This document shows, piece by piece, positions 53,699 through 62,596 of a stretch of DNA of 64,000 bases. Each line of letters starts with the position of its first letter. Within the stretch, counting starts at the first letter, position 1. A model generated the notes under the pieces. It worked only from the letters and a program-made list of their open reading frames with translations, was not told where the DNA came from and did not search any database. The stretch lies in the NCBI GenBank assembly GCA_033442325.1, contig JAWQFM010000036.1, positions 528,943-592,942 of the forward strand, given 5' to 3'. The stretch is from Salpingoeca rosetta (taxonomy: Eukaryota; Protista; Choanoflagellata). Position numbers and translations under genes: made by a program.

Positions 53699-56600
53699 CT
53701 AAAAGTAGGCGGAGTGATGGCGTGCGACAAGCTGGAGCAGCTTGCGTTGGCTGGCAAACAAGTTCCACCCGCCATGCACCATCATCCAGCGTGCAGTCCT
53801 GGCATCATCGTCGCTGCCGAGTTGGAGGCAGGCGGCGTGGCGCCCGCTCTCATCGTGGAAGTTGACGCACGTCGTCTCCACCCACGCGTTGTCCGTGTTG
53901 CGCGGATCCTCGCCGTAAATGCGGTCGACAATCGTGCCATCAGCAAAGAGTTGTGCAACAGACTTCTCCTCTTCCTTGCTCAGCGCACCACGCTTGTCTT
54001 TGGTGCCGAGGGCCTCCTCCATAAACTCGCGGCCGCTGGTCAGGGCGACGTCCTCCCCGTTGTCAACAAAGCCACCAGGGATGGCCCACATGTTGTTGTC
54101 CATGCGCTGAATGGCCACAAACTCCAGCACCTTCTTGCCGTCGCGCTGCAGGATGCTGCCATCTGGTGCCCGCTTCCACCGCGTCACCACCATGTCCGCT
54201 GCCTGGTTCACGCCCCACTTGCCCAGCAGGCCGCGGCCTGTCATGCCCGTGCGTCCCCACGGGTTGATGGGGCGACCGGTGCTGCTGTCGATGCTGATGC
54301 CGCTTGGGTGGCACGACGTGCGATCAACCACCCTGCCGAACACCTCGTCCTTCACATTGAACTTGATCTCGCGCGGGTCCGCAGGGTCCGCCCACACGGG
54401 CTGCCGTGCCACCGCAGGGTGGGTGTACTCGACAGGCTCGTAATCGGGAAACACCACATCCCAGGGCACCTGCGACGCGTCAATGGTAAAACGCTTCACG
54501 CCGTTCGATCCTGGGTACTCCTCGGGTGGGACGAATCCATCCTGCGCACGGGTGGCAGCCGGCACCGTGTCCTTGTCATGCTTCGCGTCTGCTGCTGCTG
54601 CGGCGGTCGCAGGGAGCTCCTCCATGTCCGTGTAGTCAGCAGAGTCGAGGCGCTGTACCTCATGATTGTGCGTGCGTGTGTGTGTGTGTGTGTGTGTGTG
54701 TGTGTGTGTGTGTGTGTGTGTATGTGCATGTGTGTGTGTGTATGTGTATGTGTGTGTGCATGTGTGTGTGTGTGTGTGTGTGTGTGTGTGTGTGTGTGTG
54801 TGTGCGTGTGGCATTCGCAGAGAGGGGCGTGTGAATAAGACATGAGAGTAATTGAGGGGAGGGGGTGGAGCAGGAAGCATCGTCTCAACGCATGTCCTGC
54901 ATGCAAAATATGTTCGTCTTTCAACTCACATGATGTTGTCGTTCCTGTTGCTGGAGGGTTGTTTGAGACGATTGCTGGCCAGCCTAGGCAAGTGAAAGTG
55001 CGTATGTACGTTAGTGATGGGTGTGTGTGTGTGTGTGTGTGTGTCTGTCTGTGTGTGTGTGTGTGTGTGTGTGTCTGTGTGTCTGTGTGTGTCTGTGTGT
55101 GTCTGTCTGTGTCTGTGTGTGCGGGGGTGCGGGGTGCGTTTACACGTGTGGCTCTCGCAAGCAAGTGTGGTGGTGCAAACACGGACCCTGCATAACCAAT
55201 TACACCCATCAGGTGAGCTCGGCAAACTCACCGTCTGTGTCTGCGATGTGGTTGGATTGCCCTACATTATCAAAGCAAGACACACGCACGATTCAACACC
55301 AAACACAACGAAAGACGATGCCATGTGAGTGTTGAACAGAAGATGATCACGCCCAATCGTGATTAGTCGTGTTCCACTCGCTCTACACACACGTAGCACT
55401 TCCCATTGTCTCACACACGCATGGTACTCCTCATCGTCCCTCTGCACTATGTGCACACTCATTGTGCAAGCGAGTGTTCTGAGCACGCGTGCTGCTACTG
55501 GTACCTGCTCAATCGACTGCTGGAGCCGAGCAAAGTTGCTGTTCATTGCCCGCTGCATGTCGGCCATTTCGCTTCGCATGTGCTTCAGCATCTCTGCATT
55601 CTGCGACGCAAGCTCGCTCACCGCCAACCACGATGCAGACGCTTGCTCCTGTATTCCGTCTGCCCGGTCGTTGACGTTGAGCTTGAGATGGTTCAGCATG
55701 CCCTGCCACCGTGACGCCGGCTGGGTGCGCTGCGTCGACGTCTCGGGGATGAGCACAACTGCTTCGGCAGGCCACGTGCACACGGAGGAGGTGTCCACCA
55801 TGAACCGTTCAAGAATCAGCACCCGCCAGTGCGAGTTCAACAAGCCGGCAGTTGCAGCCAGTGGCTGAGCGATGACGTAATTCCACAGCGTGCCACAGGC
55901 GACGAGCAAATACCGGTGCAGGAGAAACTGCTGGTCGTCGAGGATTTGCGCCTTGGCGAGCGTCAGCTCCATTGCAGACCGGTCCTGCACGCGCTCGTAC
56001 GAGTCCGAGAGAATGGCGATCAGCAGGTTCAGTAGAATCACCAGCGTGACAAACATGACTGCCACAAAGATGACGCGTGCGCTGATGCCGTCACTGCTGT
56101 CGTCAAACAACGTCTGGTCGTAGTCGCCAAACAACAGCATGTTGGCAGACGTGAACAGTGCTAGTGCGACGTCTGAAAACCCGTCGGCACTCGCAAACGA
56201 CGAGGTGCTGGCAACGCCGCTGCTGCTGTGGTGGAGCAGCACGAACAGGCTGTTGGAAGCCCCGAGCACAACGGTCACGAGCACAATCAAAAACACGTAC
56301 GTGTCCTTCAAGATCTCGAGGATCATGATGATGAGTGGGCCGGTGCTGTCAAACGGCAGCAGGAAGTACAGCAGCCGCAGCCACTGCACAATCACCGCGT
56401 ATGCCAGCAGCGTGCGGGCCTGCGTGTCGCCTTGGAGGTGCAGGATGCAGAAGGAGAGCGTGAGAGCCGCCCGTGCCATGTCGAGCCAGTTCCAAATGTT
56501 GCTGAAGTAGCGCGAGCGACTGCGAAGCAGCTGCTTCACCTCATTCAGCGCTGCGAGTGATGTCAAGGAGATGGTGGCGATGACGGCTCGATAGTGTGAG

Positions 56601-59600: not shown

Positions 59601-62596
59601 GCGATCTCCACACCAAAGCGACTCCGTGTACCATCATCCACCAGCAAGAACAAGTCATGTTGGGCATTGAGCGCTACGCCGAACGTGTGGTTATCTCCCA
59701 GGCTGCTGTAATCGATATGATGTGGAGGGTCCCCAGCCTTCACGCGAGCACAATGAAACGCCAAGGCACAACGAAGCAACTATGAGACTATGGCACGAAG
59801 CGGGAATCTGGCAGTTTTGGTGGTGTGTGTGTGCGTGTGTGTGCGTGTGTATGTGTGTATGTGTGTGTACGTGTGTATGTCTGTCTGTGTGTGTGTGTGT
59901 GTCTGTGTGTGCGTGTGTTTGTGTGTGTATGTGTTTGTGTGTCTGTGTGTCTGTGTGTATGTGTGTCTGTGTGTGCATGTACTGGAATGGGCCACCAACA
60001 GAAATGAGGGCTTCGTGGTTCTTGATGACGCCAAATGTGCCTAAAAATAGGAGCACGCATAGCGAGAACGTGTGGGTAGTCGTAAGGTGGTGCGAAACAA
60101 GAGTGAGCCATGATTCACACAGCGCAAATCTATCGCTGGCCTCCTCACCAATGCCAATCACGAATGGAGCGTGTCTGCTGTTGTCCTCTTCTGTTTGTTG
60201 CAGGATATCTGCAGCCAGCTTCATGCAGCCTACTCAACCACGGCGTGCATGGAAGGGAGTGAGATGCAGGACATGCTTGCAGCCACGCGCACACACACAC
60301 ACACACACACACACGCAGATATGCAGGCAGTCACGCACACACACACACACACAGATACGCACACGCACACGCACGCACACACAGATACGCGCACGCACAC
60401 ACAGATACGCACACGCACACGCACACGCACAAGCACAAGCACACACATACGCACGCACACGCACACACACAGATGCGTACGCAGACGCGCAAGCGCAAGC
60501 ACAACGCTCACCTGTGTCACAGCCCCCAGTGGTGATCCATGCATTTGTGCGCTGCGACACCAACTGCAAAAACTGCGTCAACTGCCGCTGAGTGTCATCG
60601 GCAAGGGTGAACTGCCGTGCTCCACCGGTCGCGCTCACAACCAAGTTAGGTTGCACAAAGCTGCGACCTCGCTGCCGCATCAACATCAGCTCTGCAAACT
60701 CGCAGGCATCCATGGGGCTGTCTTCTGTCGACAAGCACAGGTACGGCACCTGCATCACCACGAGCAATGAAAGCGGCATATGTGAGATGTTTGCTGAGGA
60801 TGGTGACTTCACACAATGCTCAAGCAGACCAAGACCTTGAGACGTGCACAAACGACAACAGTTCAGTGTCGGCAGTGACATGGAGCTCACAACAGCACAC
60901 ACGTATACCTCTGAGGCCTTGTCTGCAAACTGCAATGCTCCCCAGCCTTGAGAAGATTCCAGAGCTGAGGATCGGGCATCGCCCATGTGGAAACTGCAAC
61001 CCTCATACGCGCAGGCAGTATGGTCAGTGAGTGGGCTGAGTGAGCACAGACAGAACAGGTGCAACGATAGATTCCAAGAGAAGCCAGGCGGTCGCAGCGT
61101 GCATGTCAATCGACATCAGCGTACCGCTGGATGAGGTCTTCCAGTTTCCGGAAATGTCCCTGCGTAGAACATCCAATGCAAGCAAACATACAAGCATGCC
61201 CAGTGTACACGCATGAGAGAGAGAGAGTGTGTGTGTGTGTGTGTGTGGGTGGGTGGGTGTGTGTGTGGGTGTGGGTGTGTGTGTGGGTGTGGGTGTGTGT
61301 GTGTGTGTGGGTGTGTGTGTGTGTGTGTGTGTGTGTGTGTGTGTGTGTGTCAGGGATGAGGTGAAACAGTGATGTGGACTGGGAGTTCACACTCACAGAG
61401 GACTCAGTGTCAGCGGCTGTGGGAAACAGTTTCTGTGTGTCTGCATGTTCTTTGTCCACGCGCTCATTCCACGCAAGTTGGGTGAGTTGATGCCCCTCTT
61501 CCACGGCAGCGATGGCTCTGCGCTTTCGTCCTCGCAGCGCCATGGTTCTGGCTTGCTCCTGATGGAGAGGTGGGAAGCAGCCACTGAGCACAGAAGGGGC
61601 GTTGTTGTTGTCAGAGATCGCCGAGTTGTTTGTGGATGTTTGTTGAATATTTTGATCAATTATCGGCAGTAGGGCATCAAGGATCATTGATTGAGTTGGA
61701 TGCACTGGGACTGTTAAAGACAGGAAGACAGCACGACCTTCGCGCATCCTTCAGCAGTATGGCGCTGCCTTTCAACCAGCCCCTGCTCCTCCTCATCAAA
61801 GTCCTCATCCCGGGAGTTGTTGAAGTCATCGACGGAAATGTCCCGTTTCAAAACGGCCTTGAGCGAGGGCAACATCACCAAGGTTTTCAGCTTGAGGCGC
61901 TCCAGTTCCCTTCCATCTCCCATCTCCAGCAGGAGCACAAACATCTCCAGCAGGACGAACCCCATCAAGCCGAGGACCAGGCTGATGGTGGCCACCGTGC
62001 CTGGCGACAGCTTTGCTCCGATCCGGATGCCCAAGCTGCACTCGCTGGGGCCAACCGGCTCCAGTGTGCTCGTTGTGCCATTGGTCAAGATGAAGTCGCC
62101 GCAGCCAACCTCGCGCAGGAAATCGGGGCTGAGGCTTGAGCTAAACGCTGGACTGGGGAACACCATTTCGCCCTCCGCCGTCCACGACGGCGTGTACTCG
62201 TTGTCGTTGGTGGTCCAGGCGTGAAGTCGAGCACAGAGAACCACAAACTCAAACAGGAAGAAGACGAGGAAATGCACAATGGGCGCAACGAAGCGCACGC
62301 GACGCGCCGAGCGCGGGCGATGCAAGCAGCACTTCAGGACGAACCACGCCGTGAAGCTGAGCACGAGGTTAGCGCCGACGATGCCGTACAAGATGAGGGC
62401 GGGCAGGTCCAGCACGTCGCTGAAGTACCACGGGGTGTCCAGGCTGCCTGGAATCGGAGTTGGCGCCGGCGTCTGCGTGGTGAAGGGGCCCGTCGTCCAT
62501 GTCGAGGTCGGGGAGGAGGTCAACACGCTGGTGCTCGTCATGTTTGTTGTTGAAGGTCGGGAACATGCTCGTGTTGGCCATAACCGTGGTGTTCAT
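53699..62596 (-). CDS. TRPM2-like channel-enzyme: N-terminal 3-TM module, SLOG, TRP-type 6-TM channel, coiled coil, NUDT9-H ADP-ribose pyrophosphatase (about 16 exons; in-frame ATG at 62541)
   Basis: SLOG motifs [33 protein letters not shown]...[15 protein letters not shown] and [12 protein letters not shown]. Channel motifs [28 protein letters not shown] and [16 protein letters not shown]. Nudix motifs [15 protein letters not shown] and [24 protein letters not shown]. All junctions can be joined in frame with GT-AG. Confidence 0.8.

Follow-up and report, generated by a model that had tools for sequence, protein, structure and literature searches.

An expressed gene of Salpingoeca rosetta encodes a natural chimera of the TRPM2 and TRPW channel families

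The srTRPM2 chanzyme from the choanoflagellate Salpingoeca rosetta (PDB code 8sr7) is encoded by a 27-exon gene at GL832967 (P0151/P0152), and ten of its ADP-ribose (ADPR)-binding and catalytic residues have been defined experimentally (10.1101/2023.03.16.533055). In TRPM2-like gating, a rotation of MHR3/4 and the rib helix carries ADPR binding to the gate. The TRPW channels, which are named after their WD40 beta-propeller, are treated as a separate group-1 TRP family in two preprints (bioRxiv 10.64898/2026.06.15.732245 and 10.64898/2026.06.15.732144). The clade is named in the former and in PNAS PMC13663828, while TRPW1 is described in the latter, where its reported gating ligands are bacterial lipids.

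The same S. rosetta genome contains a gene that combines parts of both families. It occupies positions 53699-62541 on the minus strand of the window, the whole 64,000-nucleotide stretch of DNA that was analysed, and its 19 exons encode a 1666-amino-acid protein, XP_004987771 / F2USX8 (here P0001), which is very probably PTSG_11274. The gene is expressed, and the protein it encodes is naturally chimeric, with parts from two TRP families. The SLOG, Nudix box, pre-S1, pore and post-S6 sequences quoted in the initial annotation are all present on this strand. The gene end given there, 61558, coincides with the acceptor of annotated exon 2, but the annotated gene extends to 62541; an internal Met (MALRGRK) lies within exon 2 at 61543. 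The gene is composed of the following features:

61738..62541, minus strand: exon 1, from the annotation; residues 1-268, a Ser/Thr/Pro-rich N-terminus with three predicted TM helices before SLOG
61558-61397, 61159-61125 and 60993-60909, minus strand: exons 2-4, mapped exactly, from the annotation only; residues 269-362, the lead-in to SLOG
58729..60749, minus strand: seven SLOG/MHR1-2 exons of 238, 81, 41, 159, 85, 91 and 130 nt; residues 363-637
57578..58482, minus strand: four small exons of 60, 46, 71 and 81 nt; residues 638-723, a remnant of the MHR2/MHR3 boundary
55505..57298, minus strand: channel exon, a single exon of 1794 nt; residues 724-1321, the TRPW-family block
55261-55232 (30 nt) and 54983-54930 (54 nt), minus strand: two mini-exons; residues 1322-1349, a Gln/Thr-rich linker from the coiled coil to NUDT9-H
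54652-53702, with the stop codon at 53699-53701, minus strand: NUDT9-H exon, the last exon; residues 1350-1666
54061..54360, minus strand: a gene-conversion-like tract inside the NUDT9-H exon, recognized by sliding nucleotide identity

The annotated protein maps exactly onto the window, and the joints derived from reads agree exactly with the 19-exon annotation. Stranded RNA-seq from three runs yielded nine GT..AG joints and two matching loose ends between the exon at 59737 and the NUDT9-H exon. Three of the joints connect SLOG exons (59415-59578, 59093-59329 and 58859-59001, with an acceptor loose end at 59737), four serve the small exons (58219-58422, 57923-58172, 57659-57851 and 57299-57577) and two the mini-exons (55262-55504 and 54984-55231), where the loose end at 54930 runs straight on into the start of the NUDT9-H exon. 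Since these joints and loose ends connect 59737 to the NUDT9-H exon, the late SLOG, channel and Nudix parts are located on one transcript, and the objection that they might belong to separate transcripts fails. RNA depth at the locus is modest, about 5-50 reads. The stretch is present in runs from five studies, and in an independent DNA run a 2917-nt contig covers 55134-57974, the channel exon with its neighbours, with zero differences.

The read-checked stretch ended at 59759, so the exons upstream rest on the annotation, which is also the only source for the intron at 61559-61737 joining exon 1 to exon 2. By inspection, the topology of exon 1 fits the positive-inside rule and would place SLOG in the cytosol. 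The architecture given for this protein in the preprint likewise includes ‘three additional TM helices’, 9 TM in total (bioRxiv 10.64898/2026.06.15.732245).

The SLOG/MHR1-2 region resembles that of TRPM2. The Pfam family LSDAT_euk matches residues 364-629 (E 5e-55), identity to TRPM2s over the stretch is 40-67%, and sliding windows detect no TRPW signal within it. Its seven consecutive exons agree in length and phase with exons 4-10 of srTRPM2 (238, 81, 50, 153, 85, 91 and 133 nt). In the SLOG tree, P0001 is placed within the choanoflagellate TRPM2-like clade with support of 97, on a long branch (1.83). The N-terminal ADPR-site residues Phe523 and Arg530 (F523, R530), equivalent to srTRPM2 F268 and R275, are both conserved, and comparison of the SLOG exons with the srTRPM2 gene gives a dS of 1.66 and an omega of about 0.3.

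The 1794-nt channel exon encodes a linker helical domain with a beta-sheet, the pre-S1 region, S1-S6 with the pore, the TRP helix and a C-terminal coiled coil. The pre-S1 sequence SLFSEII...ELFQ...VQLRWVTYG, the pore sequence LLFGDYD and the post-S6 sequence quoted in the initial annotation all fall within 57298-55505. The block is 46-52% identical to the WD40 channels of the TRPW family. Its nearest kin there, one from Microstomoeca roanoka (P0003) and the other from S. rosetta itself (P0004), share 46% with it over ~570 residues. Linker, pre-S1 (KW..YGR), S1-S6, TRP helix and coiled coil are all common to P0001 and TRPW. Among 64 long relatives of the exon, 51 contain WD40 and none contains SLOG or Nudix. 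P0001, in contrast, carries SLOG ahead of the channel and NUDT9-H behind it instead of the beta-propeller, for which no Pfam match was found in the protein. Of the three TRPW paralogs mapped, which have 1-3 exons, two (P0004 and P0005) encode the channel module within a single large exon, and the third, P0010, has an intron within the TM domain.

The TM tree, a quick search like the others and built with six TRPM references and no TRPV, TRPA or TRPC references, places P0001 and its closest relative, P0002, as sister to P0003 and P0004 within TRPW, with TRPM set apart (SH-aLRT 99). An AU test rejects the grouping of P0001 with TRPM (p=0.008), and the tree in the preprint (10.64898/2026.06.15.732245) also assigns P0001 to TRPW. 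After S6 the TRP box W-K-F-x-R is not present, nor is any Trp; this part follows the TRPW consensus SDSYERIQ.....E....RA.I. The AF2 model of the block (pLDDT 87, pTM 0.82) comprises six TM helices, the TRP helix and the coiled coil, with helices at 404-456 (S6 and the TRP helix) and a long one at 530-597, in keeping with the description of TRPW1 (bioRxiv 10.64898/2026.06.15.732144). The putative S2-S3 cation-site residues are E976, Q979, N993 and D996; the E..Q (S2) and WN.LD (S3) motifs align with those of srTRPM2 and are also the TRPW consensus.

The initial annotation described the pore as non-TRPM and similar to TRPV or TRPA. The first part is borne out, and TRPM membership of the pore is contradicted by the tree, the AU test, the absence of PF25508 and of a WKFxR box. 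The second holds at the level of the fold: the top 50 Foldseek matches to the AF2 model are TRPV1-6, Nanchung-Inactive and TRPA1 (TM-score 0.4-0.5), the best, if weak, sequence match in the PDB is TRPV4 (E 3e-11), and the predicted linker beta-sheet, to which a C-terminal strand is added, is TRPV-like. However, identity to TRPV and TRPA1 is 13-20%, and no ankyrin family matches P0001 at E<=1. TRPW is much the closer kin, and replaces TRPV or TRPA as the pore donor.

The C-terminal domain aligns over its full length with the NUDT9 ADP-ribose pyrophosphatase (PDB code 1q33, E 5e-63), which is a free mitochondrial enzyme, whereas the P0001 domain is encoded at the end of a channel gene, by its final exon. 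The Nudix box is intact at residues 1539-1562, with the helix REFMEEAL identical to that of srTRPM2; identity to srTRPM2 is 78-93% in 60-residue windows, and the NUDT9-H tree groups P0001 with the S. rosetta TRPM2 paralogs. Residues W1436, D1502, F1544, E1558, E1562, D1598, R1600 and D1632 are conserved, and with the two SLOG residues all ten experimentally defined srTRPM2 residues are kept. Over the tract at 54061..54360 nucleotide identity to the srTRPM2 gene is 92-98%, against 65-87% in the flanks, and dS is 0.04-0.14 in the core and 0.7-0.9 in the flanks (flank omega about 0.3). The deviating letters in RNA and DNA reads over this tract are srTRPM2 bases, that is, cross-mapping. In S. rosetta the NUDT9 domain is a promiscuous one, fused for example to a tyrosine kinase (P0190).

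Along the protein, sliding windows assign residues 329-658 to TRPM, 749-1288 to TRPW and 1379-1666 to the TRPM2 NUDT9-H, and at residues 659-748 neither TRPM nor TRPW is significant. Homology to srTRPM2 starts at residue ~326 and fades at ~690. Against 8sr7 the SLOG region scores 251 bits and NUDT9-H 495 bits, but the TM domain only 33 bits, confirming that P0001 is a paralog and not the characterized channel. PF25508 (‘TRPM2-like domain’, MHR3/4) is absent from P0001 even at E<=1, while it scores 90-101 bits in srTRPM2, M. roanoka TRPM2 and PTSG_05446; among 66 proteins with a TM-domain match to an srTRPM2-seeded profile, P0001 alone has no MHR3/4 match. Compared with srTRPM2, P0001 lacks MHR3/4, the TRPM transmembrane domain and the rib and pole helices, including the rib helix that carries the E1114 cation site of srTRPM2, and is annotated with an additional three-TM exon at its N-terminus. 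The separate phylogenies of the SLOG, channel and NUDT9-H modules are mutually incongruent, as expected by the initial annotation for a chimera. Domain or exon shuffling, also proposed there, is the best explanation of P0001: the SLOG half has introns at the srTRPM2 positions, and one exon holds the whole channel block, much as in the TRPW genes, which are intron-poor.

We consider the following account of the chimera, its origin and its mechanism likely as a whole. In a duplicated TRPM2 paralog, a segment from a TRPW gene with few introns would have taken the place of roughly 13 central exons, with breakpoints at or adjoining the introns on either side of the 1794-nt exon, and the NUDT9-H exon would later have been partly homogenized with srTRPM2 through gene conversion. 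P0001 would assemble as a tetramer into a cation channel whose pore is of the TRPW type. Its cytosolic face would bear a working ADPR-binding cleft (F523, R530) and a hydrolase active on ADPR (E1558, E1562, D1632). ADPR would modulate or gate the pore by way of the linker and TRP helix of the TRPW block, probably acting with Ca2+ or Mg2+ at E976/Q979/N993/D996, and would be broken down locally by the NUDT9-H module, as happens in srTRPM2. The weakest step is the coupling. Gating of the pore by ADPR itself has a chance just short of even.

A merging of neighbouring genes by the assembly or annotation could be suspected from exon 1, which is attached by annotation and whose unspliced ORF would stop 7 codons past the proposed donor. 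For the SLOG-channel-Nudix core this artefact is refuted by spliced reads from the three RNA runs, which bridge each junction between 59737 and 54652, together with the independent DNA contigs over the channel exon and flanks and the presence of the stretch in runs from five studies, and for the gene it is regarded as extremely improbable. A fast-evolving TRPM2 paralog, the middle of which diverged past recognition with no exchange between families, is hardly more credible. It would agree with the long SLOG branch, the S3-S6 core is common to all group-1 TRP TM domains, and a weak 33-bit similarity to srTRPM2 persists; but the identity to WD40 channels includes the cytosolic linker and coiled coil, P0001 lies inside TRPW beside a paralog from the same genome and not on the stem, its union with TRPM is rejected, and one exon stands where srTRPM2 has 13.

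A young recombination accident, transcribed yet unused and decaying, is improbable as well. Modest expression, Gln/Thr-rich mini-exons resembling improvised linkers and the failure to find an ortholog in the M. roanoka transcriptome would suit it. Against it, the ORF is intact across 19 exons and correctly spliced where reads cover it, the low omega extends over SLOG and the NUDT9-H flanks, and the ligand and catalytic residues are all kept. The fusion is old, since the channel block is only about 50% identical to its nearest kin, and it has probable counterparts elsewhere: a second SLOG and TRPW-TMD protein is tabulated in the preprint for S. infusionum, and in another organism (L003) an 8-bit HMM match and a 7-9 residue match weakly suggest one. 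The closest relative, P0002, lies on a 2.5-kb contig with a TRPM MHR3-like motif upstream and ‘YVPPLEY’ downstream. A more serious contender, quite plausible though clearly under an even chance, is a real and expressed chimera in which ADPR does not gate, the TRPW module answering its own ligands, such as lipids, and SLOG/NUDT9-H acting only as a tethered ADPR hydrolase or scaffold, or as a site that regulates but does not activate. TRPM2-like gating cannot be assumed, as the MHR3/4 and rib-helix transduction layer is missing, and given the reported lipid gating of TRPW1, ligands other than ADPR may act on the P0001 pore; the promiscuity of NUDT9 domains is in line with this. Yet F523 and R530, essential for srTRPM2 activation, were kept at a dS of about 1.7 and an omega of about 0.3, and the S2-S3 cation-site motif is intact.

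The TRPM2/TRPW chimera is less novel than the initial annotation assumed. PTSG_11274 was already placed in the TRPW clade in June 2026, and credited there with SLOG, with NUDIX and with three TM helices beyond the usual set (bioRxiv 10.64898/2026.06.15.732245); this one sentence is its prior mention, and nobody has otherwise characterized it. The architecture itself was thus already flagged, and what the present analysis adds is its origin at the level of exons, its support from RNA and the conservation of its sites.

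The window gene is a single multi-exon gene on the minus strand (53699-62541). An exhaustive HMMER search with its channel exon returned a 100% identical match in a 1666-residue protein, P0001 (EGD81237.1, XP_004987771.1, UniProt F2USX8), which is recorded as "Nudt9 protein [Salpingoeca rosetta]". Mapped onto the window, this protein is encoded by 19 exons with GT..AG introns between them.

Exons of the window gene
62541-61738, minus strand, exon 1, aa 1-268
minus strand, fourteen small exons, aa 269-723
57298-55505, minus strand, channel exon of 1794 nt, aa 724-1321
minus strand, two mini-exons of 30 and 54 nt, between the channel exon and the last exon
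54652-53702, minus strand, last exon (NUDT9-H), aa 1350-1666

Stranded RNA-seq reads from three runs of this species were aligned to 53760-59759, the junction of exon 1 lying further 5', and reads were skipped at the microsatellite stretches 54661-54819, 55009-55133 and 57975-58143. Nine GT..AG joints were found.

Joints in stranded RNA-seq
54984-55231, minus strand
55262-55504, minus strand
57299-57577, minus strand
57659-57851, minus strand
57923-58172, minus strand
58219-58422, minus strand
58859-59001, minus strand
59093-59329, minus strand
59415-59578, minus strand

Loose read ends at 54930 and 59737 continue into the start of the NUDT9-H exon and into the sequence of the preceding exon, respectively. 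Since the joints and loose ends connect the exons, the late SLOG region, the channel and the Nudix domain belong to one spliced transcript, rather than to the separate transcripts that the initial annotation had regarded as incompatible with a fusion. Exon borders worked out from the reads, blind to the annotation, coincide with the annotated ones. In an independent DNA run, a 2917-nt contig spans 55134-57974 with zero differences, and the stretch is present in runs from five studies; the spliced reads and this contig rule out an assembly chimera. Five or more of its introns contain long (CA)n/(TG)n microsatellites (53500-61400).

Annotated exon 1 (61738-62541) encodes a Ser/Thr/Pro-rich N-terminus and three hydrophobic helices, predicted to be transmembrane, with an NGT site in the loop joining helices 2 and 3. 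Its open reading frame, if unspliced, ends 7 codons past the proposed donor. Exon 1 matched none of the about 150 channel-exon relatives that the exhaustive search returned, a set to which TRPM2-type proteins do not belong. P0001 is very probably PTSG_11274, as judged from its feature set (9 TM, SLOG, NUDIX, no WD40, TRPW in the tree), which fits uniquely, and not through an accession table.

The best PDB match of P0001 is the characterised S. rosetta chanzyme srTRPM2 (8sr7), but the similarity is very uneven along the protein: 251 bits for SLOG/MHR1-2 (aa 326-690), 495 bits for NUDT9-H (aa 1383-1666) and 33 bits for the TM region, with no alignment for aa 690-890 in the PDB search. This unevenness rejects identity with srTRPM2 and bears out the earlier view that the gene is a paralog. 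The Pfam MHR3/4 model PF25508 matches srTRPM2, the TRPM2 of Microstomoeca roanoka and the SLOG and NUDIX channel PTSG_05446, and does not match P0001, the only one of 66 proteins with a TM match to an srTRPM2-seeded profile that lacks an MHR3/4 match.

Searched alone against the PDB, the channel exon retrieves TRPV4 (E 3e-11), Drosophila Inactive and Chlamydomonas TRP1 first, and srTRPM2 ranks after these. Its closest relatives are P0002, a 598-aa channel fragment (52% identity), P0003 from M. roanoka (46% across channel-exon residues 25-593) and P0004, an S. rosetta "WD-40 repeat protein" (46%), and many more S. rosetta paralogs are found among them. According to Pfam, WD40 β-propellers precede the channel domains of the top relatives. 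WD40 is present in 51 of the 64 matches with more than 300 aa ahead of the TM domain, and none of these 64, P0001 excepted, contains SLOG or NUDT9-H. Sliding 60-aa windows along P0001 yield a clear-cut mosaic.

Sliding-window assignment along P0001
aa 329-658, TRPM only, 40-67% identity
aa 659-748, neither TRPM nor TRPW
aa 749-1288, TRPW, 40-85% identity
aa 1289-1378, neither TRPM nor TRPW
aa 1379-1666, TRPM2 NUDT9-H, 78-93% identity

The pore had been described as TRPV/TRPA-like, which holds at the level of the fold and not for the family. Modelled with AF2 from 70 TRPW homologues (pLDDT 87, pTM 0.82), the product of the channel exon has a helical linker with a small β-sheet, six TM helices with S6 continuing into the TRP helix, and a C-terminal strand followed by a 68-residue terminal helix. 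Each of the best 50 structures that Foldseek retrieves from the PDB is TRPV1-6, Nanchung-Inactive or TRPA1, with no TRPM among them. Membership in TRPV or TRPA is rejected on the absence of ankyrin repeats and an identity of only 13-20%; the true family of the channel exon is TRPW, the WD40-repeat TRP channels. In the TM-domain tree, a "quick" search of 45 TRPW-type and 6 TRPM rows only, the branch between TRPM and TRPW has an SH-aLRT of 99, and P0001 with P0002 is sister to the WD40 channels P0003 and P0004 within a starred subclade. Trees in two 2026 preprints that include TRPV, TRPA and TRPC references recover TRPW as a separate group-1 family (10.64898/2026.06.15.732245; 10.64898/2026.06.15.732144).

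Constraining P0001 to TRPM lowers the log-likelihood by 28.6 units (AU p=0.008). MHR3/4, the TM domain and the rib and pole helices are spread over 13 exons in srTRPM2, whereas the window gene has the single 1794-nt exon. The tree, the AU test and the exon structure together reject a divergent TRPM. In further "quick" trees, NUDT9-H of P0001 groups with the same-species srTRPM2 and PTSG_05446, adjoined by M. roanoka TRPM2, and its SLOG falls on a long branch within a choanoflagellate TRPM2-like clade (97). As the three trees place P0001 differently, the histories of the modules are incongruent, the outcome that the initial annotation expected of a chimera. Its chimera claim is correct: the window gene is a real, expressed TRPM2/TRPW chimera.

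Seven consecutive exons (238, 81, 41, 159, 85, 91 and 130 nt) match the 27-exon srTRPM2 gene in length and phase (238, 81, 50, 153, 85, 91 and 133 nt); therefore the N-terminal half arose by genomic duplication from a TRPM2-type gene. TRPW paralogs are intron-poor: the P0004 gene has one exon, that of P0005 has three, with a 2692-nt exon encoding WD40 through the coiled coil, and that of P0010 has two, the sole intron lying within the TM domain. TRPW homology starts about 25 residues inside the channel exon and stops a few residues short of its 3' end, and TRPM2 homology picks up again in the last exon. In the simplest history, an intron-free TRPW segment would have replaced the central exons of a TRPM2 paralog, with both breakpoints probably at or adjoining the introns flanking the channel exon. 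The two Gln/Thr-rich mini-exons look like an improvised linker. The stub at aa 659-723 has no match to the TRPM MHR HMM, so the exact 5' breakpoint is placed only within aa ~659-748.

The last exon is 85% identical in DNA to that of srTRPM2, and the similarity extends about 95 nt into the 3' UTR. Identity is 92-98% within 54360-54061 and 65-87% outside this tract, and PTSG_05446 is matched at 100% over a 60-nt block. Relative to srTRPM2, the core has a dS of 0.04-0.14, whereas the flanks reach 0.7-0.9 and the SLOG exons 1.66, with omega ~0.3. NUDT9-H identity is 69-71% between S. rosetta paralogs versus 66% between srTRPM2 and its M. roanoka counterpart. This pattern is concerted evolution and not evidence of recent domain acquisition. 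"Other letters" and excess read depth in NUDT9-H arise because srTRPM2 reads cross-map onto the conversion tract, and an extra near-identical Nudix copy is rejected on this account.

At 53870-53905, each run has more than 300 reads whose match to the NUDT9-H exon is confined to 36 nt and which diverge on both sides; at 53881, about 85% of reads have T, where both the window gene and srTRPM2 have C. Another highly expressed NUDT9-type transcript, from elsewhere in the genome, has this 36-nt stretch. The genes of srTRPM2 (P0151) and PTSG_05446 (P0154) are tandem neighbours with about 650 nt between them (L001, 1-2347 and 3001-14452; GL832967.1), and the NUDT9-H exons of these two and the window gene exchange sequence, the 60-nt block included. 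S. rosetta also has a NUDT9-type domain on a tyrosine kinase (P0190, TK/HMTK protein kinase), and three ENA metagenome proteins (P0166, P0192, P0214) combine it with EF-hands; SLOG accompanies it in some of them, and a TRPM-type channel domain in none. It seems that shuffling of the ADPR module is widespread.

P0002, the sister of P0001, is encoded on a 2492-nt Logan contig, L003. In frame upstream lies ALDLALDFAVKRKKPDFVHLYM, the top TRPM MHR HMM match among all six-frame pieces, although a weak one (8 bits; HMM consensus "LnealmtALlnnkveFVeLfLe"). The contig ends about 180 nt downstream in "YVPPLEY", and srTRPM2 has "YVPPEEY" at the start of NUDT9-H; this end, of 9 residues only, is not scorable with the NUDT9-H HMM. 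These features weakly suggest an orthologous chimera in another organism. An incomplete S. infusionum protein, m.363794, with SLOG and a TM domain in TRPW is listed in Table S3 of 10.64898/2026.06.15.732245. Word-indexed searches with SLOG, NUDT9-H and P0002 gave no full-length orthologs of the chimera, and the exhaustive HMMER search gave the fragment P0002 and WD40 channels only.

In srTRPM2, F268 and R275 of MHR1/2 are essential for ADPR binding, W1264, F1372, D1330, D1426 and R1428 of NUDT9-H contact ADPR, E1386 and E1390 are Mg ligands and D1460 is the catalytic base (10.1101/2023.03.16.533055). All ten are kept in P0001 (F523, R530, W1436, F1544, D1502, D1598, R1600, E1558, E1562 and D1632, correspondingly). 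In S2/S3, E976..Q979 and N993..D996 align with E850..Q853 and WNRLD of srTRPM2 and are also the TRPW family consensus. Their position is presumably that of the Ca2+ site of TRPM2/4/5/8. Because these residues and motifs are conserved, P0001 is expected to assemble into a tetrameric cation channel and to bind and hydrolyse ADPR.

The transduction layer of srTRPM2 consists of MHR3/4 and the rib helix, on whose rotation TRPM2 gating is thought to rely (10.1101/2023.03.16.533055). In the window gene, unlike TRPM2, this layer is removed, and the ADPR sensor and hydrolase are joined to a TRPW pore with a TRPV-resembling fold. Opening by ADPR is uncertain, since MHR3/4 and the rib helix are absent and TRPW1 is reportedly gated by bacterial lipids (10.64898/2026.06.15.732144). 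It is possible, and proposed here tentatively, that a portable TRPM2 cassette (the MHR1/2 ADPR site and an active NUDT9-H) gates a TRP pore of another family without MHR3/4 and the rib helix. The result would be a second ADP-ribose chanzyme whose wiring is independent, and at least two to three lineages of choanoflagellates would have retained it (S. rosetta, the organism of L003 and S. infusionum).

A literature search by accession found no paper citing P0001. The TRPW clade was named in a bioRxiv preprint of June 2026 (10.64898/2026.06.15.732245; short version in PNAS, PMC13663828), where PTSG_11274 is entered as SSN=TRPM, tree=TRPW, SLOG 1, NUDIX 1, WD40 0 and 9 TM, and chimerism, exons, gene conversion and ligand sites are not discussed. 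Domain composition and clade conflict are thus already known, which limits the practical novelty; what is added here is the origin of the gene, the proof of one transcript and the analysis of the ligand sites. Both parent families are expanded in S. rosetta, with 8 TRPM and 18 TRPW genes. Should the channel prove responsive to ADPR, ligand-sensing modules are swappable across TRP families and the minimal coupling elements become definable; otherwise P0001 would serve as a natural control separating ADPR binding and hydrolysis from gating. The gene is a clean, datable instance of exon-level domain shuffling and gene conversion in the group most closely related to animals.
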